Positions 7,234 to 64,000 of a DNA stretch of 64,000 bases are shown piece after piece. Within the stretch, counting starts at the first letter, position 1. Each line of letters begins with the position of its first letter. Source of the stretch: Penicillus capitatus (Eukaryota; Plantae; Chlorophyta); the NCBI GenBank assembly GCA_965649825.1, contig OZ287701.1:733101-797100 (forward strand), in the 5' to 3' direction. Both the position numbers and the translations under genes were made by a program. Below the pieces are notes generated by a model that was not told where the DNA came from, ran no database searches, and saw only the letters and a list, made by a program, of their open reading frames with translations.

Positions 7234-10200
7234 CTACTGTGTTAGGCATTTGAGATTGTCTGAAAACAGAAATGCCTCTTTCCATAGAGCTTCCATTGCG
7301 TTCTCCACATTAGCACTGTCCAGGAATGGCTCGACGGCAGGAACAATGCGGACTTCAGTGATGTCACGTGGTTTGGCATATTGACCTTGCGCCAGACGGC
7401 ACGTATACTGTTCGGCCTTTCGAACGACCAGAGTATAGGGAACGCCAAATCCCATTTTGCGCTTTGTGTATTTGAATATAGTATACTCTTCCATATAATC
7501 GACGTCTAACTGACTGCTCTTTACATAGAGCTTCTTCTTATCGTCTCTGCCGATGGCATCGACAAAATCCGCTGCCAGTGCATGATCCTCGAGTTCTGTG
7601 ATCTCGCTCATCTGCCATTCAGAGAATCAAAAGAGTTCTGCCAGTACAGTGCAATGGTACCTACCTGCGTTTTGAGCATGAATCGGATGTCCGTTTCGCG
7701 TCCCTCCACTTCATCTTTATGACAGATACATTGCCGTTTGACATCGCTGACGATCCAGCGAAGCGGTGCCGTTTCGACACCGATAAAATTCAGCTTGGCA
7801 TCGTACCGTGCCGTCACGACACCCGTCCCTGTCTGCGCTACTACCTTGACGCCAATTTGATCTGCCTGTCGCGGCTTTGCATCGCCATCTGGTGAAGCCT
7901 CCTTCATTTTCTGTGCCAAAAAGGCGCGTTCTTTACCATCGAAGAAGACAGAAGAGACAAAGGAAGTCGAAATGAATCCTTCACCGCCGTGTTCTCTTCT
8001 AGGTGCACGTCGATGGTATGCTGAATCGAACATCGGATCCACAGATCGTGTTTTTCTGCGTTCCAGAGCCTTTAGCAATTCTTCCGTCGTCAAATGCGTG
8101 GCATCTTCGACGAAAGACTGAGGAGGACTGATGACATAGCTTCGGCCAAACTTGACCTGAATCTCGCATGGACCAGTGATGTCCACTGAATAGTGTCTTT
8201 GGAAGTGAGCCAGTTGACGTCTGAAGTGCTGCCTGAATTGATCATAGCATTCTGTATTGATATGATCCACAGGTGAAGCGGCAGGAAGGTCATGCAGACG
8301 AATCACAAAGAGCTTCTTATAGTCATGCTGCGGATACCTATAGCCTAAGTAAGGCTCCAGGCGAATCGAGGCTTGGTTTCCGGCGGCGGCTTCAATCATG
8401 AGATTGTGAGCACCTGTCACATCTTTTGCGCCCCTGGATACAGCAAACACCGACATCGAACCATGGATCCACCTTTGCCTTACCGAGTGCGCAGTGTCCG
8501 TCCAGTTTTCTGGCGTTCGGCTGCTCGCATGTGAAGACTCTCAATCTGTTTTGCCAACAGATAGAGTTCTGCCTCTGTTCCTGTTCCTTTGACGATCTTT
8601 CCTGGTTGCGAAGCTCTTTCTTGAGATTGAATGTCAACGAATGCTCTAGATCTCCGATGCAGCGTTCTGGCGAGTTCGTCCTCGTTTCCGATCACTTCAC
8701 ACGCTGCCTCGCGCTTGATAAAGAAAACTTTCTCGATGGTGATTTTTGTGAGTAAGACTGAGGCACTGATATGGAGCGACAGGTGCAAAGAGGCTTTGTC
8801 CATTTCGGCTATGAGCAGATCTAGCATTTCCTTTCGTGCTCCATCATTCCATCTTTCCATCTCCAGTGCCTGAAACAGGAAAACGCCATAGGAATGGAGC
8901 AAATGTCGTGATCGTGATGTGACAGACCGTTGCGAGTTCTGGATGGAGGCTCGATTGGATCAGATGCTTGCCTTGCTTCATGAAGGTGCACAGAAGACGA
9001 CCCACTCGACCAGATTTTCCTCCTTCCCAGCGTTCCTCACTGACGTCATCGTTTGGATCAGCCATCAGATTCTGATACAAGCTGTTCCATTCGCTTTGAG
9101 CACCAAAGCAATCGTTATAGAGCGGATTATCATAGAACTTCTCGACCGCCTCAGAGAACTGTCTCGCTGGGATTGGTCTTATTTTTTCCTCCTTCAGACA
9201 ATGATCGATGAACATTAGCGGCACCAGGTAATCTGGCAGGAAAAAGACGCGACCGCCCACCAATCCTGTCGTGTATATCCAAGTGCACAAGACTCGGAAG
9301 ACGGGGAAGAGCCATTGGTTCTTGAAGAAGTACTTCTTGATCACAATCCATTTAACAACTTCAGCCGGATCAGCAGAGAGTCGAGCCCATGTCCTGGGAA
9401 GCTTTCGGTTTAATCGGACTCTGAGATGACACTGTTTGTCATTCAAGCTCTGTTTTGCAAATAGAGAAGAGCATTCGGATTGCACTCTTTCCAACCGCAT
9501 CAATTGTTCTTCCTTGCTCAGGGATGTATTCCTTGAAAAATGCACCTGACCTCTCTTCTTCATTGCCACCAGAACACGCACTTCTCCTCTTGGCTCATCA
9601 AACAGCAGGAGTTGACTGGCACCGAAGAGCACACACGCGGCGACGCGATCACAGGCATCTCCCAGGACACGTGCCAGAGTCGTGTGATCTTTGTAAGTCT
9701 CGTACAATGTCCTACACAGCAGAGTCTTGCCGTCAGGGGAGGAAGGTTAAGGGCGCACTCAATCGTTCCGTCAAAGATTTCTTTGACACTGGCCGAGATC
9801 TCGGAGTAAATCGAGTGCGGAGATTTCGCCACAGAAGCTGCATTGCTGTAGATCTCGGCCAAAAGGTCATTCAGCATCCATGGAAAGCTCAAGAAATAGA
9901 GCATCTCTTTACCTGATACCATACATCTAACACATTTCGAGAAAGGATGTGTGTCTTACCCACAGAATACTGATCGCCATAATGAGGAGAGTAGGCAGCA
10001 TAGTACCAAGCAGACGCTTTCTTTCTCTCTTCTTCTCTGCCGTGATCCACATCCAGTTGTCGGTCGTTGTGAAAGATCGCCTTGTATTTCTTCACGATCT
10101 CCTTCAGCATGAACTTTACGTTCTTCTTGACGTCATCCATTTCGCTTTCGAGCCTGGGATGAACTGAGGCGATGGCTCCAGACCACACCTCTGCCTCTGT

Positions 10201-13200
10201 CTCAATTCCGTACATTCGCATGACGGACAGGATTTCTTGATTGTATTGTTTGAAGAGAATGCAAGCATCGTCTATGTAGTTTTCATATCCCTCGACCCTG
10301 AATGCCTTGTCTGGATGTGGCCGAGTGCTTCGCTCACTTGCTGCAGGATTGACGGTGTCTGTCGCATACTTGTTGCATTCCCTGAACATCGTCCCCAGAA
10401 CACGTATGGACGGATAACTTGGCTTGTCCGTTTTCATCATAAAATCCGGATACTGCTTGAGTTCAGATCTGATATCTGCCGGCAGATGTACCCAGTCTCC
10501 AGACTTAGGCGCATCCACTGCCTGTGCATGAATCTTGGCCAGTTGCAAACAGATATCGCTCTCCAATCCTTGCTGATCTGCCAGTGCCTTGTGTGTATTG
10601 TCAATCGTACCCAATGTGTCATTGGCAATGAACTCGCATATGTAGTCCGCCATTTGACTGAGTCGGACCTCCTCCTCGTTGTTCTTCTTGGCTCTCTCTT
10701 CGTATTCCATGGGCGCTTTGATCGGAATGCTGGGCAACAGGCGTGGATCCCAGATACAGTGATACTGATCTCCATCCAAATCAGAACCGGAGAGTTCGTT
10801 GGGATGCGGTCGCGGTCCCTTCTGGGGAAAGACGACACAGTCGACGAGATGGCGCAGCTGCGGGACATCCCTTCCTTTAAAAGTACGAACGTCCCCTGGA
10901 TGAATGCATGGATTCTTCATGATGACGATCTTGGAGGTAATCACACGGGTGTCTACCCCTGGGCGATGCAGCTGCTTCGATATCTGGATAAAAACCTGAC
11001 CGTACTCTAGCACACCTTCCTCGTCCATCACTCCAATCAACACGCGTCCCTTATCGTCATCAAGGCGGACTCTGGAACGTTCTCTCAGGTCTTTCATTTG
11101 CAGCCTTTGGCAGACGAGGCAACATCAGTCATAAGAGAAGGGATCGTGCAAGAGAGTGTACCGATAGCTTGCGATCATGATGCTGCGGAAGAACGCATCG
11201 GAAGTGAACTGGAATCGCACTCTTTGCAGATGATTGATGTCTTTGGATACAGTTCCCTGAAGAGCTTTGACTGCGGCTTCCTCCTCCACAAACATCTCAT
11301 TCATCTCTGCGATCTTATTCTTCAACAGAGCCTCAAAAACATCGTCTCTCACTCCCACATTGTTCAGCAACATGATAATCTGTATGGCGAAGACGAAGCT
11401 GTCGAGAAGGTGCAATGAAGAGGAATAACAGACCTGTTGGTTGAGATGCAAAGGGAGGGGACGTGTATACTCAAGCACTTCGATGTTTTTGCTCTCGGAT
11501 GGATACTTTGACATGCTGTCCCGTATTACTGGCTCATCGAGTTGATATCTATGTTTCCTGAAGAATTCATCTGGCCAGACAGACACCACGCCCTTGCATC
11601 CTCCGATTCTGATCTGAAATGCAGAAGGGATTGTTGACTGGTCCAGTGCATGCCGCTCCTTCACCTAATATATGAGACGTCACGTGCAGAAGACATGGTG
11701 AAGAGTCGCTTGCTTTCTTAGCCAAAGAGACCGAGATGAACCCAACACCATCGGAGAAACAATAACAACCCGATTCCACATCTGTCTCTTGGTAACACCG
11801 GCTCACAGAGATCGTCCGTGTCGATGTTGAAAATGCCAGTCCCAGTCTTGACATATAACGCGGCACATGTCGAATACCTAAAGATCACACACGACTTTGA
11901 AACGGCGCCCGAAGCCGTAACGCACCAGAAAGGTCTCCAATTGCATTCCGAATTCTCTCTGCAATCTTGTTGTCGTCGTCTTCTCGGATGAAGTAGCAAG
12001 AATGTGCACGTATCTGACTGTTCGATGCGGCCAAGTAGACATATCGATCCGGACCGATTTCTATTCCGTTTATCAAGATATCATGCACTCGATTCGTGAT
12101 GAGGGACAGATCTCCATGAAGACTTGTCAAATTCTCACAGTTTTCATCGCGAATGGCCACGCGAATGAAGATATCGGGAGTGTGCTGCCGCACAATGCGA
12201 TTCGTCTAAGGCACCATTCCATGCCTCACCAACACGAGCGTAAGAGATCGTACTTGGACTAGATCTGGTTCATAGAAGCGAAGTGACGTCGGTGTGATGA
12301 TGACTCGCTTCATGTAAGCATGATTCCAGCTCGGCGGGCTGAACTCTGGAGTAAAGTTTGCTGACTCCCGCTCTCGTATCATGAACCGGACGGGGTCGCA
12401 GAAGAGCTGTTTGGACGTCACCTTTGTCAGCTCGTATATCGCTCTGACGGCTTCATGAGCTTCCATAGAGTTGAGAATCTGATGGAATCGATTGTTGATG
12501 CGTTCGGCAACGAATCCAGGCGTGCTCATGAGACAACGCATTGCGTAGTTCACTTCGGGATCCTGTCTGTGGACACAAGAGCGTGTGAAATTCAGCCATG
12601 CTTCGTCTTCACGAAACGGCCTTGTGTTGCATACTGTCTCCACAGATGTAAAGTGCACGGTCACTCCTGACGATTCCAGCAGCTTCAACACTTCGCGCAC
12701 TCGATGGTCAATGAGATTATGCTGAGTAGATGATCGTGGGTTCGGTATCTCCAGCTTGTAGGTGAGGCAGTTGGAAAAGATATGACGGCTTTCTGAATGA
12801 ATGTATTCATTGACGCGTCGTGCACTTTCCCTGACGTCGCCATCAGACAGCGAGATTTCGCTCAGACGTGGAGTCTGTGCAAAAGTGAGATAGAGAATGA
12901 GAATGGCATCCTCTGTGTTGTCACTCTCTTGAAAATCCACCAAGGCAAATTCCCTCAGGTCTGCGAAGGATGCCTCTATCTGCAACTTATCGTTTACGAT
13001 GATGACAATCCTGTTAGATCCACGTTCTAACCGTAGACTGCTTGCATTTCCCAATCGCATCTGCTGCGTATACAGCCGTTGCCATTTGAGTGACCCCAGG
13101 GATGTCTGATGTAAGCTCAGTCTCAGTGTTGTTGCTCTGGGGAAGTAACTGGGCCGATTCAATACCGTTGTCCAGATGTCGAACTCATCGGACTGAAAGA

Positions 13201-16200
13201 TGTCGGAAGTAAAGAGCTCCAGAATTTTCTTTTCAAAGCAACGTGTGTTTTCTTCATCCGTGTTCTCCTTCAACGTCAGCATGGCTTCTGAAAAATAGTT
13301 CGTGCTGATGGAGTTCTCAATCTTCACTATTTTGTCGATCCACTCGGTGATCTGGAGGACATCGTCATGCGTTCCGCGAATGATATTTTTGATGAAGGCA
13401 ATAGCTTTCTTGTATATCTCATCGTCCGAAACGAAGATGGCAAAACGCACAGCGATCTTCCACTTCTCCGACTCCTCCTCGTCGAGGAACGGTAGCTCTT
13501 CTGGATAGGCGCCAGCGACATTGATTTGATTCATGATGTCCTGCATTTCGTTCAGCTCTGTTTCTGAATATCTGTTCTCTTCTGTCTCTAGCTCTTCGTG
13601 TTGAAATGTCTTCCTGCCTGAAGCTTCTTCCAAGGCCAACACCTTTTTGCTGTGCGCTTCGGTTGGATCAAAACAATAGCCCGGCTGCATCATCTTCTGG
13701 ATGACGCTTGCTTGGGTCTGCATAAAGTTCAAGTAAAACTGTTGCCGACTCTTCTCCTTTTCATTTCTGCATATAATATAGAATTTGCCGTTTGATGCTC
13801 GACAAGCGCGTCCTCGGCTCTGGATAAACTGTCGAAGATTATCGGGCGCCTTCATGCGGATCACCATGTTGCAGGATGGCACATCCAAACCTTCTTCGAG
13901 AATAGTCGTTGTGACCAGCAATCTAATCTGACCACGTCGAAAATCATTCAGGATCTCCTGTTGCTCTTTAAGCAGCAGACCATCGCCACAGATACCTCTA
14001 CCAACAATGACTTGAGGATTGAGTGCCGTCCGAATACCCGATATCTGCGACAGACATCTGCAGAGTTTTTGTGCCGTTCTTCGCATGTCGACAAACACCA
14101 GAATTCGTGAGTCCCTCCCGTTCTCTTCTTTATGCTTCTCAATCATCCCAATCATCCTCTTGCACTTCTCTGAGAGGAGATGGCGTTGGAAGACATCATC
14201 GTTCTTGGTCTTTGAGCGGACGTGCTGAAAAAGAGTCGCGTAGAGAGGCCGACGCGTTTTGAAATCCTTATCGAATCTGCAGACACAGAGCGGGTCCGTA
14301 TTCGATGCTGTCAGAGGGAGGGGCGTCTAAACGGACCCGTGTAGCACTTCTTTCTTCCATTGCTCCTGTCCCGGTGAAGGATCGTCAATGCCGCTGAAGA
14401 CTTTCTTCAACTGCTGCATAGCGATCTCATGGCCAATAATGTTGTTGATTTCATGGACTGCCAAGAGCTGATTCATATGATCTCTCACGGCTTGGCTGCA
14501 GAAAGAGAGATACGTCTACGTTACTGTCTACTGGCAGAGACATACCCATAGCAGATGGCTTCTTTCTGATTGCGGAATTCGGTTTTGTTAAGAGCCTCGT
14601 TCAGTTCATCTTCTATCTTTCTGAGCTTTCCACGGAGTTTGTTGGTGTCGACCTCCTGATTGTCTCCTCCGGTCAATAGACTCTCCAGTTGACTGAACTG
14701 TGGGGCAATTCTTGACAGGCGATGATGTGTCGCTCGAGTGACTTCACGCATGTAGTTATCGACTTGTTGTTTAAACTCGAATTCAGGTTGTTCCTGGCTG
14801 GGATCCACCAGAAAGACAATATCACTTGTGCGATGTATTCCGTTGTCATACGGATCATTCTGACGAGGATAGCAAGGATGGCAGTGTAGCTTCTCGGCTA
14901 TACGACTGATGTCTCTCTTGACCGTTGACCCCGTAGAATCACTCTTCGGATTGTCCAATGGAGATGCCGTCATTCCCATGATCAGAGGTCTGGTGGATGG
15001 ATCTACACTTGTAGCGATTGTTCGAGTAAACAGCTTTGCGTAGGGACTGCTTCCTTTGGCCTCGTGGGCTTCGTCCAAAACCAAGCAGCAGAGATCCTCT
15101 ATCCTTACTGTATTGATCTCGATCAGCGCATTGAGACATGCACATGTGCAGACCAGGATATCATATTGGTATTCACCAATGACCTGCAAAGATGGTATTG
15201 GCATACAGTGAAACAAACAGTCAGCAATAGCATCGCACTTTGAGGTGCTCTCTCCTCTGGTCTGGATCCATCTGACCAGACAGGGTGACGACTTTGGAAG
15301 CGGAGAGTTCAGACTGAATGGCGAAGGACTGCTGCTCGACAAGGTGATTGGTGTTGACCACAAAGACAGCCACTTTGTGGGGATTGATGTGCAGCATCGC
15401 TCTCAAGACACCGGCTGCCACGAGAGTCTTGCCCGATCCTGTTGGCAGACAGAGCAAGCTGTTTTGTCTCAGGCAGAAATTCAGCATCTCCATCTACGTC
15501 ACATCGTCTCACACAAATGAGATCTGTCACATCACAGACTTGATAATTCCGCATCTTCGTAGCGGTGAGTTGCTCCAGGGTATCTTCGGATGTTTGATCG
15601 ACATCAACACGGACCGTGGGATATGTGCGTTTTCCCTCACGACTCCAAAACTTCCGTCCCGTCTAGACGTCACATCTCGAAAATCAGAATGATCATCCAG
15701 ATGACTTGACGGACCCTTCGCATGATGTCTTTTTGTGTGATGGGTGGCACACCACACGTTTCCAAATCCGTCAGCAGTCGTTTCCACTTGTTCTCGCTTT
15801 TCCTTTCGCCATTTGGAAACATCAAGGCAACATGTTTCGGACGGATTTCGTCGTAGGCCGTTTCGGTGACGGCATCCGAGTGACATACGCCGACCTTCTT
15901 CTCGCAGTTCCTAACGATGCGGCTTGAGCGTGTACCGTCTGTCGTTTTTTGCATTTGTGTACCTGCAGTTGATCGTCCAACCGACCTCATCGTTTCCCGA
16001 TTCATATTTTTCGCGTCGAAACGTCGCGTTGCTCTTCTTGAGTGCGACCTGTGCGCGCAACATCTGATGCATCCTTTCGAAGAAATGTCTTGAAGCTGGC
16101 AGCACCTCAGGACGGACGATAAGTTTGTTTTCGTTCTTCAAGATCGCCAGCTGTGTGAACGTATACAGCTCTGCCGAACAGTAGCGGCACTCGACTTTGC

Positions 16201-16210
16201 AAAGCGACAT
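7234..16210 (-). CDS. Giant multidomain RNA-silencing protein: RLR-CTD-like Zn domain + DExD/H (Dicer/RLR-type) helicase + RNA-dependent RNA polymerase + TUTase-like NTase + KH-like + C-terminal domain
   Basis: Helicase Q-motif MRNYQ, Walker A LPTGSGKT, DEAH, TAS, ILVFVDMRRTA, TTILEEGLDVPSC, QSRGRA; RdRP motifs SRLGLAFS, FSDGVG, SAFQIRIGGCKG, KNPCIHPGD, catalytic SGSDLDGD (10768-10782), LSFPW. Junctions traced in frame with GT-AG sites plus one GC-AG. Confidence 0.85.
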
Positions 16211-18860: not shown

Positions 18861-20458
18861 CTAGCCCAAAAAAGTTCCCTGGGAGAAAGAGATTATCTCA
18901 TGCCTGAACATCGCCAGCAAACAGAGATGGACTTCTAGATCCGTCGTCAACTTTGTATCGACCACCTTCGAAGCGTAAAAAAGATCACCTTTGAGAGACA
19001 GAGTTTCATTAATCCATATCGTGCACACGATGGTTGACCTAACATTCGGCAAAGCACTGCCGACCCACAGAAAAGTGACAGCCGACAATATACGAAGGCA
19101 TGGAACGGCTCATACGAAAAGACGTGGAGGCCTTCTCTTTGTGCTCCATTTTCTCTTTGGAACATACATGTAAAGTCGTCGAGAGTCCATTAATCTTCAC
19201 TACTTGCTTAATATTGGAAACATCGATGCCTCTCAAAGACACTTCGAAAAAGGGCTTTCTTCTTAGTGAGTTCATTATTCAGGCGGTAACTTGGGTGGAT
19301 CGGCGGAGAACCGGTGGTTTGCCTTTGTTTTTGTACGTTGGAGTAGTTGGATACTGAGAAGCGACGTCTGCCGCGGTGCTCTTCGCTCTGGAGTTATCAC
19401 CATGCAAGATCCCTATCATTCCACACGCCATCACACAAACCCCCAATGCATGGGATGTTTACCGCTGACAGCGCCTTCTAGCGTTTTCTGTATGACCACC
19501 AACAGGGCGGGAGGCATTTTGTGGACAATATACCAAACAGTGCCACAGAGTAGGAGGAAGAACATCCATGATGGCAGAATCGAACCAGCAAAGATACCGA
19601 TAAGGACACCATAGATCAGCGTCGTGCTCGGCTCGTCCGAAATCAAACTCGCGAGTGAGGGTCCAGATTCAATGCGGATGGCCTGATGTCTGGCCACGCG
19701 TTTCCACAGATCGACTTTGGACTCGAGAACCATGACCAAATCGGCCCATTTTTTCTCAGGCTCTACGTCCTTTTCGCGTCCGTAGATCTCCAAGAAGTGC
19801 TCGCCTAGATGATGGAGGTGTCTTCGGTGATCGAGGTCGATATGTCCTTACCGGCATATTTGCAGACTTCATCTTTGATGGCGTCGAAATCCCATTTGAC
19901 AGCGAGTTCCAACCATTCGGATGCCGCGGTTATCTGGTTCTTTTCCAAATCCGTGCCAATTCCTGGCGCAAGATTCTCGACATTCCTCACAAAGTTCACG
20001 CATCGGCGTGTGATGGAGTGGAACTCGAATTCCTCCGTCATGGCAAAGAGCTTTCGGACTTCGTCCATTCTATCGACCGAGAGCGTGGCTTCGGTTGCGT
20101 AAACGTGGCTCAAGAGCAAACACATATCGTCCACCGAGACGTCCATAAACATGGGCGACGATAGTTGCATGCGTGCCTCAACAGGCGCGTCGCGTTTCTT
20201 TTTCAGACTGGCATTTAGCAGCGAGCGCTTTGACTCTGTCTTAAACAGCTCTCGCTGAAAAACCGGCGACATGCTCATGACATGTTTGTGCACGGGAAGA
20301 TGCTGTTTCTGCACGACGAGTTCAAATTCGGCCGTCGCTGCATAATCCGGTGTCCAATCTTTCAGATAGGAATAGACTGTGACAACGCCTTCTTCCGGTG
20401 TTGATTTCTTCGCGTCCTCGATCTCCGTTTGCTCAACGGCGCCGTTCGTCGAACGCAT
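18861..20458 (-). CDS. BTB/POZ-domain protein with further C-terminal exons; 3' end uncertain
   Basis: FELVVQKQHLPVHKHVMSMSPVFQRELF, DDMCLLLSHVY, helical continuation (BACK-like), then downstream exons 19431-19793 and 19039-19275. Confidence 0.75.
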
Positions 20459-33233: not shown

Positions 33234-33564
33234 ATGAGCGTCTTCCATGACGAAGTGGAAGTCGAAGATATGGAATGGGACGAAGAACTGCAAGCTTTCA
33301 CTTACCAATGCCCCTGCGGCGACCTCTTTCGTATCACACTTGTGCGATGGTCGCTAATATCACGAGCTCAGGAGATGACACAACTTGTAGGCAGAACTGG
33401 TATCGGGTGAAGAAATGGCACACTGTCCGAGCTGTACACTCTACATTCGTGTGATCTACGATCCAGTCACTGCATCTCCGCTCCTACTCCATAGATAGAG
33501 CGTCTTGACGTAGGAGGATTTTCATGAGATGGAACCCGAGACGCCGATTGTTGAGGTTAAGTAA
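33234..33564 (+). CDS. DPH3: DPH3/KTI11 CSL zinc-finger protein (3 exons)
   Basis: Spliced [61 protein letters not shown]. Confidence 0.95.
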
Positions 33565-34938
33565 GAGACGTCACATCATAGGAAGATGGAAGCCAGTTTG
33601 CAAAAAGGGAAGGGCTGGACTGCAGCATCGCCCATTGTGACTTGTATTCAAAGGACGTAGTAACGTCTCTCAGACATCGATAACGGATGGATAACTGTTC
33701 TCTGGAGAGACGCGACTGAAATGTGTGAGGAATGGACGTGTGAGGCTTCTTTGGGAATTTTGGACTGCCGAGACGTATTCCCGAATTACCCAATGTCACT
33801 TCGTGTACACCTCCACACACGAATCTCTCACTCTTCTCTCCTTCGGTCACACTCTCCGTCAATACACGCGTCCAATTTATGCATGTGTTGGAGCGCTCTT
33901 TGCGCATTGCATCTGAACGGAGAAACAGATCGGCGGGCGGCGGATCGGCGACGTCGATTCGTAGAGGTCTCCATCTAGAAGGCCACAAATGAACCACCGA
34001 AAGTGTGACGACGATCGGGGACTCGAAAGGAGACTGCACTCGATTGGCAAGATGTGCACCCCGTGTCACGAATGCACGTTGCATAGAGGAGCGAAGCTTC
34101 TGAGCACATTGGAGGTGCGGTGTACAGACAATAATGGATGAGAAGTAGAGTGGGTGCGAAAGGAGCGAAAGCATCTGCCTTCCTTGAAATCCAAGAAACG
34201 ACCAACGCAAAATCTTATCACTGCATGACATCGAAGTCGTTGCCTCTCCCTTCCCTAAACACAAGTGTCGATTCGACATCTACCCTGTTGATCATGGCCG
34301 ATCCGATTCGCACCCGGCTTTCGACGTAGAACACCGAGCTGTGGTTGACCGGATTCGACATCGTTTGCTTCGGGAATATTGCCCGTCTCACACTAGAGAA
34401 GAGTGAGAATCGCTAGTACATCGCGGAATGGAGATACATGAATGGGTTTGGCACCGGTGCGCAAAGCGGACTCCGTGTCTTCCGGCATGACGATGGCAGC
34501 ATCGCCACAGGGAGGCTCCGTAACAACCAGATGAAAGGACACGTCGTTTTTTAGCTCAATGATTCCGTGTCTATTGCGACAGAGAAGCAGAGAGTCTTCT
34601 TTGACGTTGCCATCAGATGGGCCATTGTCATCAAGGCTCAGGTACTCGATTTCGCGAAGAACGCAATCGACGGCTGCTCGCTTGGCCAGGACTTCGGCAT
34701 GAGCGTCGTTGATGCGCTGAGGCGATGCCCAGCGACATGGCAGGCACTTTGTCCCTGTCGCCAGCGATGTCACACGTACGTCTTTGCCAGATATCGCGAC
34801 GACCGCTGCAAGGGTGGTGTATTCATGGGCCTGCGGTTTTCCTTTCTTCGGAAGTTTTCGAAACAGCTCGAAAACGTGATTGACGATCGTCGTTGTTGTC
34901 ACGACGTCGTCATTCAATTTTCGTCGTTTCGATTCCAT
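33557..34938 (-). CDS. ADAT1: tRNA-specific adenosine deaminase 1 (Tad1/ADAT1)
   Basis: LATGTKC, DAHAEVLAKRA, PPCGDA, LRRKPGKGEATTSMSCSDKILRW; no dsRBD seen. Confidence 0.9.
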
Positions 34939-34995
34939 CCGAACCATAAACCCAAACATGCACGACGATATCGATGCGATTCTATCGGTCGCGCA

Positions 34996-35225
34996 CGCGA
35001 TTTTCGCACAGTTGATCGATGGGATTCCGATTGTGATTGATAGGCAGTTGATCCATACGATCGCGATTGATGCGAACAAAGTTGATTGCCTTCGCGATTT
35101 TCGCACAGTTGATCGATACGATCGCGATTGTGATTGATAGGCAGTTGATCGATACGATCACGATTGATGCGAACGAGTTTTATTGCCTTCGCGATTTTCG
35201 CACGGTTGATCGATTCGATCGCGAT
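34996..35225. repeat. 97-bp tandem repeat (~2.4 copies) with internal subrepeats, GATC/CGAT-rich
   Basis: cgcgattttcgcac(a/g)gttgatcgat recurs at 34996, 35093, 35190; subunit cagttgatcgatacgatcgcgattg occurs about twice per unit. Confidence 0.88.
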
Positions 35226-46704: not shown

Positions 46705-48826
46705 TTACAACATGCGATTTGATGGAAAGACCAATTTCTCGCCCGTTTCCAGCAAACCGTCGCGGTTCGTGTAGAACACGCGATAGAGCAGATCGATCTC
46801 GGCGTCAGACATGACAGGGCCTTTGACATTCTCTTCGACCAGACGATCAAAGTCGATGCGGCGGATGTTATGCTTCTCGTGCAAGGCCGAGAGCAAGTCG
46901 TCCAGACCATCTATATGATGACTCAACATACTTCTACAGCAACAACCGCCTCACTCTTCCACTCTGCAAGGAATAGAGCAGTCGAACTTCAATGCTTTCA
47001 TGTCGGCGAGTTGCTGCTGGTGCTTTCGCGTTGGCCTGTATCGATAGTATCCATAGAACAAGACATAGCTCATGACCGACATACAGACACAGGCGTAGAC
47101 GACACTCTGGAATACTCCTGGTTGTGTTTCTAATCCCGTGAACAAGTTCATTCCAAAGAAACCTGTCACATCATCCGAAGACGGCCCAGGTAAAGGGTTG
47201 TGTGCTGCGCGGACTTGCTGGAAGAGTGGAGAGGAGCAAAGAGAAGGAGGCGATCGAGATGGTCAGGTTGATCCGGATGATCCGATTGCGAACACTGTCC
47301 ATTTGCATGTGCCACACTTCCCTGTTGCGAAGACCAAGCATTGCATGTCGCGTCCAATAATATGCTGCTGTCACATCACCTGGCGTCGTCCATGTTGTCC
47401 TCCATTTCCCGCAATGCCCCCTCGATCGTCTCCACCTGTCGCTCATAACTGTCTAAAAGCCCTGACGCCAACTTCATGTGACGCGTCACACCATTCCACG
47501 TCTCTCCGCTCTTTCCTGCGACAGAGAATGATCTCGTCGTCTGGATAATCGAATGGCAGTCACTTACCGGACTTTTGATGTGACGGCATCTGTTGATGCT
47601 CTGTTAGGCAAATGGCGCTCAAGAGCTTCTCATTGTCGACGACCTGTGAAGCCACAAGGCACTCCCACGCATCTAGTCGATGCTATCGTGCAGGATCTCG
47701 CACTTCGGCAATAGCTTCTCGCGTCTCTTTGACATCGAAGAGCATCTCAGTCAGCGCTCTGCGGATCGGAATCAACCTGAAGGGACGCAAACGACTCGAA
47801 GCGCTTGCCCCTTACAGATTACTGACCGTTGGAATTCACTGGAATTGGCATCGGTTCGATGCTGGGCATTGATGTCAGCGATCACACTCTCCAGCAGCAA
47901 TCGAACTCTCTTCGCGCGTTTCTCGAAGTACATCGTCGTCGCTTCCAACATCGCCTCGAGGACGTGCAACTCAAAAGGCACTGCCGAGACCTGAGTCACC
48001 CTCGAAAGCACGTTTTCTACCAACCGAACTGTATCCCCATGCCATCTACCAAGCAAAGATCCTCTCTCGGTCGCTCGAAAGACGGAATCACCGAACTTAA
48101 GTGGAAAGAGGGTCGCGCGTTGCGTCCATATGATCGCTTTGCACGATTCGGTACAGAAGAGAATACAACCGTCCCGTGCAGCGATGGTCGCGCGTTGCTT
48201 CGACAGTCGCGGATTTGAAGTAAACAACGAGACGTCTCGCGGTTGGAGGTGCATTTCGAACGGCGTCTTGACAAGTTCGAGTACCGTCCCGTCGCTCGAC
48301 ACCTCCACGACCTGCATTCGAGGCATACACGCAAACAGCTCAGCTTCTATGCATCCGACTTTGAACGTCGGTCTCCTGGTTGTCTGGGTATTGAAAGGAT
48401 CTGCCCGTAGCTCAGAAATGGATTGAACAACGCTGGGCGAGTCTTCGATCGAATCGTCCTGAACGCGAGGATCCATTCGAGTGCTCGCACACAAGTGCCG
48501 AACCACGTTGCTTCGTCTCTCTGCACAAGAGAAGTTCGAGCATTACCATCTAACGACCTCTCATCACTGCCATGAAGACCTCTTAAGTAAGAGACACTGT
48601 AGACAACGGACGTCCTGGGTAAAGCGTTAGCGTCTGGCCATTTTCCAAGATCCCCATCTGCCAAGGCACCGACGTTGCACTCCGTTGCACACGTCCTTTC
48701 GTTTTGCCTGTCCGCAAGAAGGCGCTGTTGTAGGAGGGGAACGGCATGACCGGTGTCCTGAAGGAAAGCAGGCGTTTCATGCACGGCATCCGCATCGCAG
48801 AGGACTGTCCAAAAACGCGTTGCCAC
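46705..48826 (-). CDS. MRS2: MRS2/CorA-family magnesium transporter with C-terminal extension
   Basis: MHLQPRDV, PFELHVLEAML, MDSVRNRIIRINL, SFFGMNL signature plus second TM helix. Confidence 0.9.
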
Positions 48827-48886: not shown

Positions 48887-50817
48887 ATGTCGAACGTCCT
48901 GCGCGTGGCCCCGCTGCGTCGTCCGTTTTTCTCTGCTGCTTTGCGTTTTCCGAGCCTCTTCGGTCAGAGCTTTCGTCCTGTAAACGCCATTTCTGTGCTC
49001 TCCTCTTTGGAAGACTCTAACGACAGGAGAGGAAGACGGATGGCTGTGGCACTCGGCTATCGGCATCGGCGACGGATTATACGGCAGACCTTGTTCCTTC
49101 TAAGAGCCTCGCTGCCTCAGTGACGGCGCCTCCAGCATCGACGAATCCTCACGATGCGATTCCCAGCTATGGTGGGTCAACCGAAAAGACCTGCGGATAC
49201 GTATGCGACGCTGTGGTTCAGGAGGCGAATCAGGAAACGGGAGTCATGCCAACTGGGCAAAACTGACGTCGGAACGGGTACCGACACCGCGTCAGATTTC
49301 CAGAGACCTAGATAAATATGTCATCGGTCAAGCACATGGGAAAAAGGCATGCATGTGTGGAAACGACGAAGAAGCTGTAATGCTGTGCTGATGTGACAGG
49401 TGCTGTCTGTGGCGGTGTACAATCACTACATGCGTATCTCTCATGAAGAAGCGCGACAGAGACAAATGCGTCCGCTGCAAGATGATCCACTGCAATCCCC
49501 AAGATCCGGCAGCCATGCGCACTGGACGCCGCCTATCGGTAGCTTCTTTACAGCTTCCGCTTTCCAAACGCACAAGTGCTCTTTAGGTATCGATATGCCA
49601 ATGGGGGCCAACATGACACGCGATATGGGAGACTACAGCCACAAAGTTTTCGATTCGGGCAGCTATCGCAGTTCAAGTGATTTCAGCGACAGTGATACAG
49701 AACAGTTTCCAATGTTCGATTCGGGGGTCGAGTTGGACAAGAGCAATGTCCTGATCATGGGTCCTACTGGATCTGGAAAGACACTGCTGGCCAAAACGCT
49801 TGCTCGCCTCATCAATGTCCCTATTGCCATTGCAGACGCTACGACATTGACGCAGGCGGGGTATGTGGGCGAAGACGTGGAGTCCATTCTGTACAAACTG
49901 CTGGTGGCTGCAAAGTTTGACGTGGCGGCAGCGCAGACAGGGATTGTGTATATTGACGAGATTGACAAAATCGCAAAGAAAGGCGAAAATCCCAGCATTA
50001 CGAGGGATGTCTCCGGAGAGGGCGTGCAGCAAGCATTGCTAAAGATGCTCGAGGGAACAGTCGTTAATGTTCCTGAGAAGGGCGGACGCAAGAACCCGCG
50101 TGGCGATTTTGTCCAAGTCTGCATTCTTCCTCTGTCATCCAACCTGTTTCATCAGGAGAGGTGTTTGGGTAGGTGGATACGAAGGATATTCTATTTCTCT
50201 GCGGTGGGGCGTTTGTGGATTTGGATCGTCAAGTTGCTGAACGTAAAGCGGAGGCCTCAATGGGCTTTGGCAATCCTGTCCGTGCCAGATACGCCAATAA
50301 TCGCAAAGAGGGTGCGAATGTTCCGGACGAAGCCCTTCTGGAAGTCGAGCAGCAAGATCTCATCAGCTACGGTCTCATTCCGGAATTCGTTGGCCGTTTT
50401 CCCATTCTCTGCGCTTTGCAATCGCTGACGGAACCTGAATTGATGCGTGTTCTGTTCGAGCCACGCAATTCCTTGATTCGCCAATACCAAGAGATCTTGG
50501 CCAAGAGTTGTGCACAGCTACACATTACAGACAAGGCGATGCAGAAGATCGCCAAAAATGCCAAAGCCAAAGGCACCGGTGCACGTGGTTTGAGAGTCAT
50601 TATGGAGAAACTGTTGCTCAATGCGATGTACGAAGTGCCAGATCTGCAAGATGAAGAACCAGTGGTGCTCATTGACGAAGAGAGCGTCATTCACAGAGGC
50701 TGTGCTGGAGGACTGCAATCAGGTGGTGCACGAGTGCTGACAGGAGACGCAGCAGAGCCGTATCGATCTGAAGCAGGATTTCAAGAGTTTGAGGCTGAAG
50801 TAGCAGAAGCCAGTTGA
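48887..50817 (+). CDS. clpX: ATP-dependent Clp protease ATPase subunit ClpX (mitochondrial type)
   Basis: [86 protein letters not shown]; presequence-like N-terminus. Confidence 0.96.
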
Positions 50818-50926
50818 TGAACGTGCCTTGGCAAGTTGTTTGATGTCTGTGTACAAATTTGTTATGTACTGGAGAGAGCTGTGTAGAGTACAAAACAACG
50901 CATATTGTCATCAAGTGTTCATGGAA

Positions 50927-51000
50927 TGCTCCTTCGGGGGATTGAACCCCGGACTTCCGGCTCATAAGACCGGCGCTCTAACCGACTGAGCTAAAGGGGC
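50927..51000 (-). tRNA. trnI-UAU: tRNA-Ile (anticodon UAU), intronless
   Basis: Cloverleaf GCCCCTT TA GCTC AGTCGGTTA GAGC G CCGGT CTTATGA GCCGG AAGTC CGGGG TTCAATC CCCCG AAGGAGC A; A and B boxes intact. Confidence 0.93.
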
Positions 51001-51833
51001 ACACCAGCAGAAACGTCTTACACGTCAACCTGACCTCATGGGCACTGTGAGAGATGGATGGCAATGTGTTGGCAATATGTTTTGCCCGTTTCATCACAGA
51101 GAAGGCTGATCGACGTTATTCCGGCGGCTGAAGAACGCGAAGTCGTTGAATGGTTTGACAGGACCTCCTTGGTTCTCATATAGTGCCTCTTTAGTGTTGT
51201 GCATCTATGTACGAGGCCATGGCCTGCCAACAGTCCAATCCATTTTTGCCTCAGGTGTGTGGAGAAGAACGATGAAGATGGCTATGTCGTGCAGGAGATC
51301 GTAAAAAATACGAAAGCGGCACGTCCGCGACGATAGAGCATGCATTGGTGTGATGACGATTCAACAGCTGAATACGTCTTTCTAGGGAGTCGAAGACTTG
51401 GCGGAAAAAGAGTATCCCGTTGTGCTTTTATGTTTCGATTGTCCTGAATCTGCGTCTTCCCCGACGGCCGAAACGCAGTGAACGAACAATGTTGCCCTGT
51501 AGATGAAGAGAGACAGATAGATCCTTTGACGTTGCATCGAAATCGTGCGTATTCGCTTCCGGCTGATTGTTGATTCGTTCGAAAGTATCAGAATTGCAGG
51601 CCGTCAACGTTGTCAAAATGCGCCAAGGTCGCGGTCGAGAGAGGCCCCTGCTCCAGGATATCCCTGCCAGAAATGAAACCGAGATCTCAATGATCCGTTC
51701 TCGGTCCCCACAGTAACACGCGATTTGTCAGATCAGAAAGCACGGATAGTAACACCCATGCATAAGCTCGACTCACGCCTTCATAGAACAGAATCTCGTC
51801 ACGATGTCCTCGTCTTCGCATTCTTCCACGATA

Positions 51834-55869: not shown

Positions 55870-64000
<8,131 letters not shown>

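Follow-up and report, generated by a model that had tools for sequence, protein, structure and literature searches.

Schizosaccharomyces pombe's RNA-dependent RNA polymerase (RdRP) complex, or RDRC, is composed of Rdp1, Hrr1 and Cid12. The RDRCs of Tetrahymena contain Rdr1 and Rdn1/2, and Caenorhabditis elegans has an RdRP/DRH-3 module. Dictyostelium Rrp and Phytophthora RDR1 have been the subject of genetic studies for twenty years. To our knowledge, Chlamydomonas, the model chlorophyte, lacks such a polymerase. Here we describe a gene on the minus strand of a 64,000-nucleotide stretch of DNA (contig OZ287701.1; the whole stretch is called the window below) from the chlorophyte green alga Penicillus capitatus, whose predicted product carries a helicase and an RdRP in one chain. 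Fusions of helicase and RdRP have been published for Dictyostelium, Phytophthora/peronosporomycetes, Hydra and Nematostella (PMC4791657).

The window gene is an intact helicase-RdRP gene. It probably represents an RNA-silencing RdRP complex in cis, in which the nucleotidyltransferase (NTase)-like and tunnel domains are non-catalytic in this alga. As shown in Table 1, the predicted protein has eight parts in the following order: a module like the C-terminal domain (CTD) of RIG-I-like receptors (RLRs), a helicase, an acidic linker, a pre-RdRP region, the RdRP, an NTase-like domain, a KH-like domain and a triphosphate tunnel of the Cet1/RESC type. The NTase-like and tunnel domains are regarded as non-catalytic because the catalytic triad of the former reads E/R/R and four conserved charged residues of the latter are replaced. 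A previous sequence-only reading of this locus had proposed one polypeptide with an RLR-CTD, a helicase, an RdRP, a TUTase-like (terminal uridylyltransferase-like) domain, a KH-like domain and an unassigned extra domain, and had known of no description of this architecture.

The unspliced minus-strand region is a series of open segments, and the frame changes between segments. Exhaustive enumeration of GT-AG introns proved too ambiguous and was replaced by peptide-anchored searches, which gave a single best intron of 46-60 nt at each junction. The intron boundaries are GT-AG in 15 of 16 cases and GC-AG in the remaining one (11713-11665). The GC-AG intron is supported because the conserved SVSLAKK/VKER junction is gapless in the homologue alignment. 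The length of the spliced coding sequence (CDS) is a multiple of 3, and its only stop is the terminal one. The joining of all exons from ATG 16210 to TAG 7234 in one frame, as proposed before, is confirmed by this 8,151-nt CDS without internal stop, and the nine junctions quoted at that time (QKDIMRR/TGRK, MRNYQ/MEML, LHG/FDK, DLVQ/TNRIV, SYR/LQMKDL, QYSVG/KEMLYF, LAT/ALEME, RTR/GAKDV and LKTQ/MSEI) were all recovered exactly. The seven introns beyond these junctions, which the frame requires in order to close, are listed in Table 1. A viral or transposon origin of the gene was rejected in view of a GC content like that of the surroundings, the 16 spliceosomal-type introns and the cellular homologues.

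The orthologue on a metagenome contig, L001, was also compared with the window gene at the level of introns. The L001 orthologue (3-1016, ENA ERZ25074695 ctg340427) encodes aa 1061-1364 in one frame and therefore does not have the introns that the window gene has after aa 1214 and 1307. This indicates gain or loss of introns between close relatives.

Table 1. Positions of the gene, its exons, domains and motifs, and of neighbouring features in the window.
Feature	Residues (aa)	Position	Strand	Evidence or remark
Whole gene	2,716 in all	7234..16210	(-)	17 exons, 16 introns, CDS 8,151 nt
Start codon ATG		16210-16208	(-)	
Alternative start ATG		16222	(-)	in frame, four codons upstream of ATG 16210
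Stop codon TAG		7236-7234	(-)	
Exons 1-6 (high to low)		16210-15963, 15910-15715, 15662-15540, 15493-15239, 15183-14546, 14495-14337	(-)	
Exons 7-12 (high to low)		14276-12254, 12205-11926, 11877-11714, 11664-11434, 11379-11162, 11104-9960	(-)	
Exons 13-17 (high to low)		9912-9759, 9711-8928, 8869-8484, 8433-7665, 7611-7234	(-)	
Seven further introns		15962-15911, 15238-15184, 14545-14496, 11925-11878, 11713-11665, 11433-11380, 9758-9712	(-)	
RLR CTD-like zinc module (Yippee/Mis18 fold class)	1-130	15769..16210	(-)	family profile, AlphaFold2 (AF2), Foldseek
RLR/Dicer-type (duplex-RNA-activated) superfamily 2 (SF2) helicase, insertion between RecA lobes	180-740	13676..15569	(-)	Pfam, PDB
Helicase motif I, PTGSGKT		15445-15425	(-)	intact
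Helicase motif II, DEAH		15075-15064	(-)	intact
Helicase motif III, TAS			(-)	intact
Helicase motif VI, QSRGRACR		13822-13799	(-)	intact
Acidic linker	741-905	13181..13675	(-)	conserved with Caulerpa P0001 only
Pre-RdRP region, family-conserved	906-1214	12254..13180	(-)	jackhmmer
Eukaryotic cellular RdRP (PF05183) and head region	1215-1900	9893..12205	(-)	Pfam
Catalytic DLDGD (DxDGD loop)	1620-1624	10782-10768	(-)	intact
Pol-beta-type NTase-like domain (GLD-2/Cid1/MTPAP class) and helical partner	1901-2244	8756..9892	(-)	
Type I KH-like domain	2245-2334	8486..8755	(-)	profile A3, Foldseek
Triphosphate-tunnel (Cet1/CYTH/RESC1-2-like) beta-barrel domain	2335-2716	7237..8485	(-)	AF2, Foldseek
BTB-domain open reading frame (ORF)		19805-20458	(-)	
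A_deamin (ADAT1/ADAR-type) pieces		33557-35106	(-)	two adjacent ORF pieces
MRS2-like magnesium-transporter fragment		47772-48506	(-)	
ClpX-like AAA+ gene		49400-50817	(+)	at least two exons
tRNA-Ile(UAU)		50926-51001	(-)	sole Rfam match in window
HUWE1-like giant E3 ligase (HECT, UBM, UBA)		56453-63984	(-)	extends beyond window end

The helicase and the polymerase were identified by Pfam directly on the exons of the window. The helicase scored 1.8e-17 with DEAD, 9.7e-15 with ResIII and 1.9e-19 with Helicase_C, and its best sequence matches in PDB are RIG-I, MDA5, LGP2, DRH and Dicer. PF05183 was found on three exon groups with E values of 2e-15, 3.7e-30 and 7.2e-78 (56.9, 105.6 and 263.2 bits, where the curated threshold is 23.8), and profile positions 16-582 are covered. 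The tail of the RdRP matched the RDR2 structures 7roz/7eu0 (E 2.5e-8). Both the helicase and the RdRP of the sequence-only reading are borne out by these matches. The region between them has two parts. Family members other than the Caulerpa lentillifera protein P0001 align from about aa 905 on, and the acidic linker is limited to the chlorophyte clade. The pre-RdRP region was recovered in about 50 family members by jackhmmer, and its profile (A5) had no significant sequence match in PDB. Spt16, the best match of A5, had an E value of 0.77 and was discarded.

Neither the N-terminus nor the last 800 residues had a Pfam match when the exons of the window were scanned, and the folds of the N-terminal and C-terminal parts were assigned by family profiles and structure prediction. 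In the N-terminal module, Cys8, Cys11, Cys82 and Cys85 are conserved in the family. A profile of 20 sequences (A4) matched the RIG-I CTD in PDB (4a2v_A, E 1.8e-4) over positions 4-126, nearly the full length, followed by MDA5 (7e-4), the DRH CTD 6m6r (1.5e-3) and LGP2, and then by Mis18/Yippee. The AF2 model of this domain has a pLDDT of 82.9. When it was compared with PDB by Foldseek, all 50 matches listed were DRH-3, LGP2, RIG-I or MDA5, with probability 1.0 and TM scores of about 0.5-0.6. The listed entries are isolated CTDs or full-length chains containing the CTD, and the top fold match is to DRH-3 CTD structures with 5'-ppp RNA. The proposed RLR-CTD is thus present, and it is located before the helicase, not after it. 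No CARD was matched by Pfam in the window protein.

The KH-like domain and the tunnel domain were examined with a profile of aa 2207-2716 (A3) and an AF2 model of the same residues (pLDDT 77.8, pTM 0.79). Positions 41-120 of A3 matched the KH domains of IGF2BP1/2 and KH3 of hnRNP K with E values of 4e-6 to 1e-4. In Foldseek the KH matches were hnRNP K KH3 and PCBP KH1, with a TM score (target) of about 0.7. The GXXG loop of KH domains reads G-N-E-D in the window (aa 2267-2270). Of this loop the A3 consensus keeps the first Gly only, with Glu two positions on, and the GXXG is degenerate family-wide. These results agree with the KH-like call made earlier. The extra domain that had been left without a name is real and can now be assigned as a triphosphate-tunnel fold. 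The last 380 residues matched RESC2/RESC1 (8fn6, 8cdp) in Foldseek against PDB with E values of 6e-11 to 1e-8, and Cet1 (3kyh_A) with 2.7e-3. Against BFVD, the matches of the tunnel domain were mRNA 5'-phosphatases of giant viruses (E 1.2e-3 for one of them) and capping enzymes. Pfam RESC1_2 CYTH-like was matched weakly in 2 of 20 members. Another Pfam entry, DUF7636, was matched in 4 of 20 family members.

RESC1/2 are Cet1-like tunnel proteins, of which the RESC2 tunnel binds the 5'-triphosphate of guide RNA, and Cet1 is the catalytic prototype (PMC10201420). In the RdRP family studied here, the conserved tunnel residues are K/R2429, E2540, D2583, R2585 (in 84 of 85 sequences), R2632, E2659 and E2677-x-E2679. 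The window protein retains K2429, R2568, D2583, R2585 and E2677, and has the replacements E2540 to V, R2632 to E, E2659 to Q and E2679 to R. Across the window protein, Caulerpa and the relative from the Logan contigs, positions 2540, 2632, 2659 and 2679 are V/T/S, E, Q and R, respectively. In triphosphate tunnel metalloenzymes, glutamates of motifs a and c (ExE...ExE) bind the metal, and basic residues touch the phosphates. The window has the strand E-I-Q-V-K (E-x-Q-x-K-F-G); it also has E2677-x-R2679 at a site that reads E-x-E in many relatives. It is conceivable that the tunnel is an active RNA 5'-triphosphatase, which would trim the RdRP products to 5'-di- or monophosphates for loading into Dicer or Argonaute. 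The fold class, which is that of Cet1 and the giant-virus mRNA 5'-phosphatases, would suit such an enzyme, as would the E-x-E that the family keeps on the final strand of the barrel, the several Arg, Lys and Glu residues conserved along with it, and the E-x-Q-x-K-F-G strand, D2583, R2585 and E2677 retained in the window. However, four family-conserved charged positions are altered, including the second Glu of E-x-E, which is Arg, and the best structural matches, RESC1 and RESC2, are non-catalytic. We therefore consider an active triphosphatase unlikely in the window protein. In C. elegans, PIR-1 is said to trim the 5'-triphosphates of RdRP products.

The NTase-like domain was recognized through its relatives. 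Pfam MTPAP-like_central (PF22600) was found above the curated threshold in the aligned homologues P0002 and P0003 (Nematostella and Endostelium), and a profile of four sequences including that of the window (A2) matched GLD-2 (4zrl_A, E 1.9e-4). The catalytic positions of the window protein read FGAS...G-E-V-R-V...W-A-R-L, giving the triad E/R/R in place of the three carboxylates (DxD...D) that accompany hG[GS] in non-canonical poly(A)/poly(U) polymerases. Of the roughly 110 family sequences in which these sites are covered, 74 have the triad D/D/D. It is E/N/D in Caulerpa and E/C/R in the nearest relative (P0023). Of the proposed TUTase-like domain the fold stands, but working tailing is not supported, two of the three catalytic carboxylates being replaced. 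Because E/R/R takes the place of the family's D/D/D, the window protein probably does not tail RNA, and its NTase site is apparently dead. The NTase should be active in most relatives and inactive in this lineage, judging from the triads.

The search for the wider family was based on the C-terminal module. An exhaustive comparison of a profile of its 850 residues with 1.84 billion cluster representatives (50% identity) gave 246 representatives at E<1e-3, 114 of them at E<1e-10. In dozens of representatives of 2,300-3,400 aa, the helicase, the RdRP and the C-terminal block follow one another as they do in the window protein. Members were found in oomycetes (Pythium and Plasmopara RDR1), Amoebozoa (Heterostelium, Acytostelium, Cavostelium, Endostelium and Pelomyxa), Metamonada (Paratrimastix), Fungi (the chytrid Physocladia), animals (Nematostella and the bivalves Ostrea and Argopecten), streptophytes (the liverworts Riccia and Marchantia, and Mesotaenium) and ulvophyte green algae (Caulerpa and Ostreobium). 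Among the named relatives, that of the green alga Caulerpa lentillifera is closest to the window protein. All three C-terminal segments were matched in Plasmopara RDR1, Pythium, Riccia, Mesotaenium and Heterostelium, and the N-terminal CTD-like domain is common to oomycetes, Nematostella, plants and amoebae. The window gene is thus a member of an old, known helicase-RdRP family, and its architecture is neither new nor specific to the alga. The claim of novelty in the sequence-only reading is not supported: dozens of representatives across eukaryotic supergroups, experimentally studied relatives among them, have this layout over the full length, and the helicase-RdRP part is already published (PMC4791657). 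In the literature searched, no name was found for the sensor at the N-terminus of this RdRP family or for its NTase, KH and tunnel domains, and an earlier description is possible.

A fully active sensor-unwinder-polymerase-tailing enzyme, with a new architecture peculiar to this alga, is improbable on the same evidence. Every fold named for it is present, the motifs of the helicase and the RdRP are unimpaired, the literature searched describes the helicase-RdRP part only, and most family members keep an intact NTase triad, so that the ancestor probably tailed RNA. However, Glu, Arg and Arg stand at the three catalytic carboxylate positions of the window protein, and the layout is shared by oomycetes, Amoebozoa, Metamonada, fungi, animals and plants, some of whose proteins have been studied genetically.

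That the gene encodes one polypeptide, as had been proposed, is supported by the continuity of the frame and by collinear relatives. A search of 5.8 billion proteins found the 2,697-aa C. lentillifera protein P0001, with 43% identity and 100% query coverage. In the global alignment to P0001 no gap exceeds 2-3 residues at any of the 16 junctions, and identity per exon is 22-61%. The metagenome contig L001 (687 kb) has an orthologue that is 57-72% identical, collinear and with the same final residue. The gene model is not due to chance, because it aligns end to end with P0001 and has this collinear metagenome orthologue. Evidence independent of the splicing model comes from L001 and from three further sources. 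On the Logan contig L002 (4.6 kb), a single uninterrupted ORF of 1,355 aa, 46% identical, begins in the middle of the RdRP and reaches the last residue. In the amoebae Endostelium and Cavostelium, 'complete' Trinity ORFs of 2,418-2,436 aa have the same domains in one chain. The family member of Phytophthora sojae, an RDR, was cloned as cDNA by 5' and 3' RACE (rapid amplification of cDNA ends) (PMC4791657). An artefact, in which two or more neighbouring genes (helicase, RdRP and C-terminal protein) were joined in silico, could explain why a prokaryotic gene caller breaks the orthologous locus into separate ORFs, but this explanation is very improbable, since no in-frame stop is met over 8,151 nt once the 16 short GT-AG/GC-AG introns are removed, no conserved internal start or stop arrangement is found, and the full-length homologues, L002, the transcriptome ORFs and the RACE-verified oomycete cDNA all show one chain.

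Several points weigh against the reading of an intact RdRP complex in cis with two non-catalytic domains. The status of a single mRNA is based on frame continuity and relatives. The fold matches of the N-terminal domain are modest (E about 1e-3), though exclusively to RLR/DRH proteins. Glu sometimes replaces Asp at metal sites, and a rearranged active site is possible in the NTase. That the tunnel is a binder and not a hydrolase is a judgement from the substitutions. The dN/dS values against L001 (NTase-like 0.17, RdRP 0.18, tunnel 0.24; range over the domains 0.17-0.26) are rough figures, with dS at 0.7-1.1, near saturation. With these values and the substitutions taken together, the NTase-like and tunnel domains are retained under constraint, but probably not as enzymes. 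A decaying relic, in which the degenerate NTase and tunnel residues mark the path to loss, would account for the several catalytic-type residues gone from two domains, but it is hardly credible, given the intact ORF, the intact helicase and RdRP motifs, the same and hence old substitutions in Caulerpa and other relatives, and a dN/dS that is low in every domain, the NTase-like domain being as constrained as the RdRP.

How such a protein may work can be proposed from its parts. The CTD-like module and the helicase would pick out RNA ends or duplexes, keep hold of them and move along them at the expense of ATP, like DRH-3 for the RdRPs of C. elegans. The RdRP would then copy the template de novo, giving products with a 5'-triphosphate. 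The NTase-like and KH domains may hold the 3' end or single-stranded RNA, and the tunnel may hold the 5'-triphosphate of the product, like RESC2 with guide RNA, and perhaps hydrolyses it in other family members. The NTase-like and tunnel domains of this alga and of its closest relatives are most likely non-catalytic modules for RNA binding or scaffolding. Tailing, if required, would be supplied from elsewhere.

For the window itself, a large RNA-silencing gene of a chlorophyte green alga has gained a well-supported annotation. For the family, folds are now assigned to about 900 formerly unlabelled C-terminal residues and to the N-terminus. This gives testable ideas: choice of template via an RLR-type end sensor, self-tailing in most family members, and reading or processing of the 5'-triphosphate of the protein's own products via the Cet1/RESC-like tunnel. 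The green-algal copies, in which the NTase is constrained and apparently dead, show which parts are dispensable for catalysis. As a tentative and wider reading, which we rate as possible and somewhat short of probable, one early-eukaryote RdRP lineage would have had the eight-part layout as its ancestral form, a complete RDRC in one chain whose end domains were undescribed, with a tunnel that links the products to 5'-triphosphate recognition and is perhaps the source of kinetoplastid RESC1/2. If this is true, nature has provided in the chlorophyte copies an experiment on a polymerase that works beside a dead NTase. The closest solved structures to the tunnel are the guide-RNA binders RESC1/RESC2 (8fn6, 8cdp), and in the same RdRP family a TUTase-like domain adjoins it. 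The idea may be raised that parts of the RNA-editing machinery descended from this C-terminal module.

The neighbouring features in the window are given in Table 1. The two adjacent ORF pieces with similarity to A_deamin carry the halves of one adenosine-deaminase domain and are probably one spliced gene. The HUWE1-like ligase includes an uninterrupted ORF of 1,854 codons. A protein 95% identical to it is present on a 648-kb ENA metagenome contig, and its best named matches are from the green algae Coccomyxa and Botryococcus. These matches, with Caulerpa and Ostreobium as the nearest named relatives of the RdRP, make two independent genes that point to a chlorophyte green alga. The tRNA gene lies directly after the ClpX-like gene.

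The window protein was also compared with known systems. Like RIG-I-like receptors and Dicer-related helicases, it has a helicase core and a CTD-type zinc domain. Unlike RLRs, it has the CTD-like domain before the helicase and no CARDs, and its output is a polymerase and not signalling. Because the CTD-like module at aa 1-130 precedes the helicase and no CARD is present, the window protein is, by its predicted domain order, not an RLR and is related to RLRs only in parts. Like the RESC1-RESC2 of kinetoplastids and Cet1-type triphosphatases, it has a tunnel beta-barrel (Foldseek E down to 6e-11). It differs from them in identity (11-15%), in fusion to an RdRP, in having the Cet1 glutamates only partly and in showing no sign of a heterodimer. 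With the GLD-2/Cid1/MTPAP polymerases it has in common the palm fold and hG[GS], and family members match PF22600 and GLD-2 4zrl, whereas the window protein has E-x-R and R for DxD and the third Asp. The RDRCs of S. pombe and Tetrahymena and the C. elegans module likewise unite an RdRP, an SF2 helicase and a Pol-beta-type NTase. In those systems they are separate subunits, whereas in the window protein they are fused, the helicase is of the RLR/Dicer type and the NTase is probably inactive. We know of no triphosphate-tunnel domain in any of the three, and the likeness of the window protein to an S. pombe-type RDRC is one of function by analogy, not of membership. The helicase-containing RdRPs of the RDR-gamma type (Dictyostelium RrpA/B/C, Phytophthora RDR1, Nematostella and Hydra) have the same DExH and Helicase_C before PF05183 in one chain (PMC4791657). 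Plasmopara RDR1, Pythium, Heterostelium and Nematostella are collinear with the window protein; Nematostella ends at the NTase and the others cover the KH and tunnel domains as well. Differences from these RdRPs are the degenerate NTase triad and the altered tunnel residues of the window protein and its chlorophyte relatives, along with an acidic linker found in their clade only.

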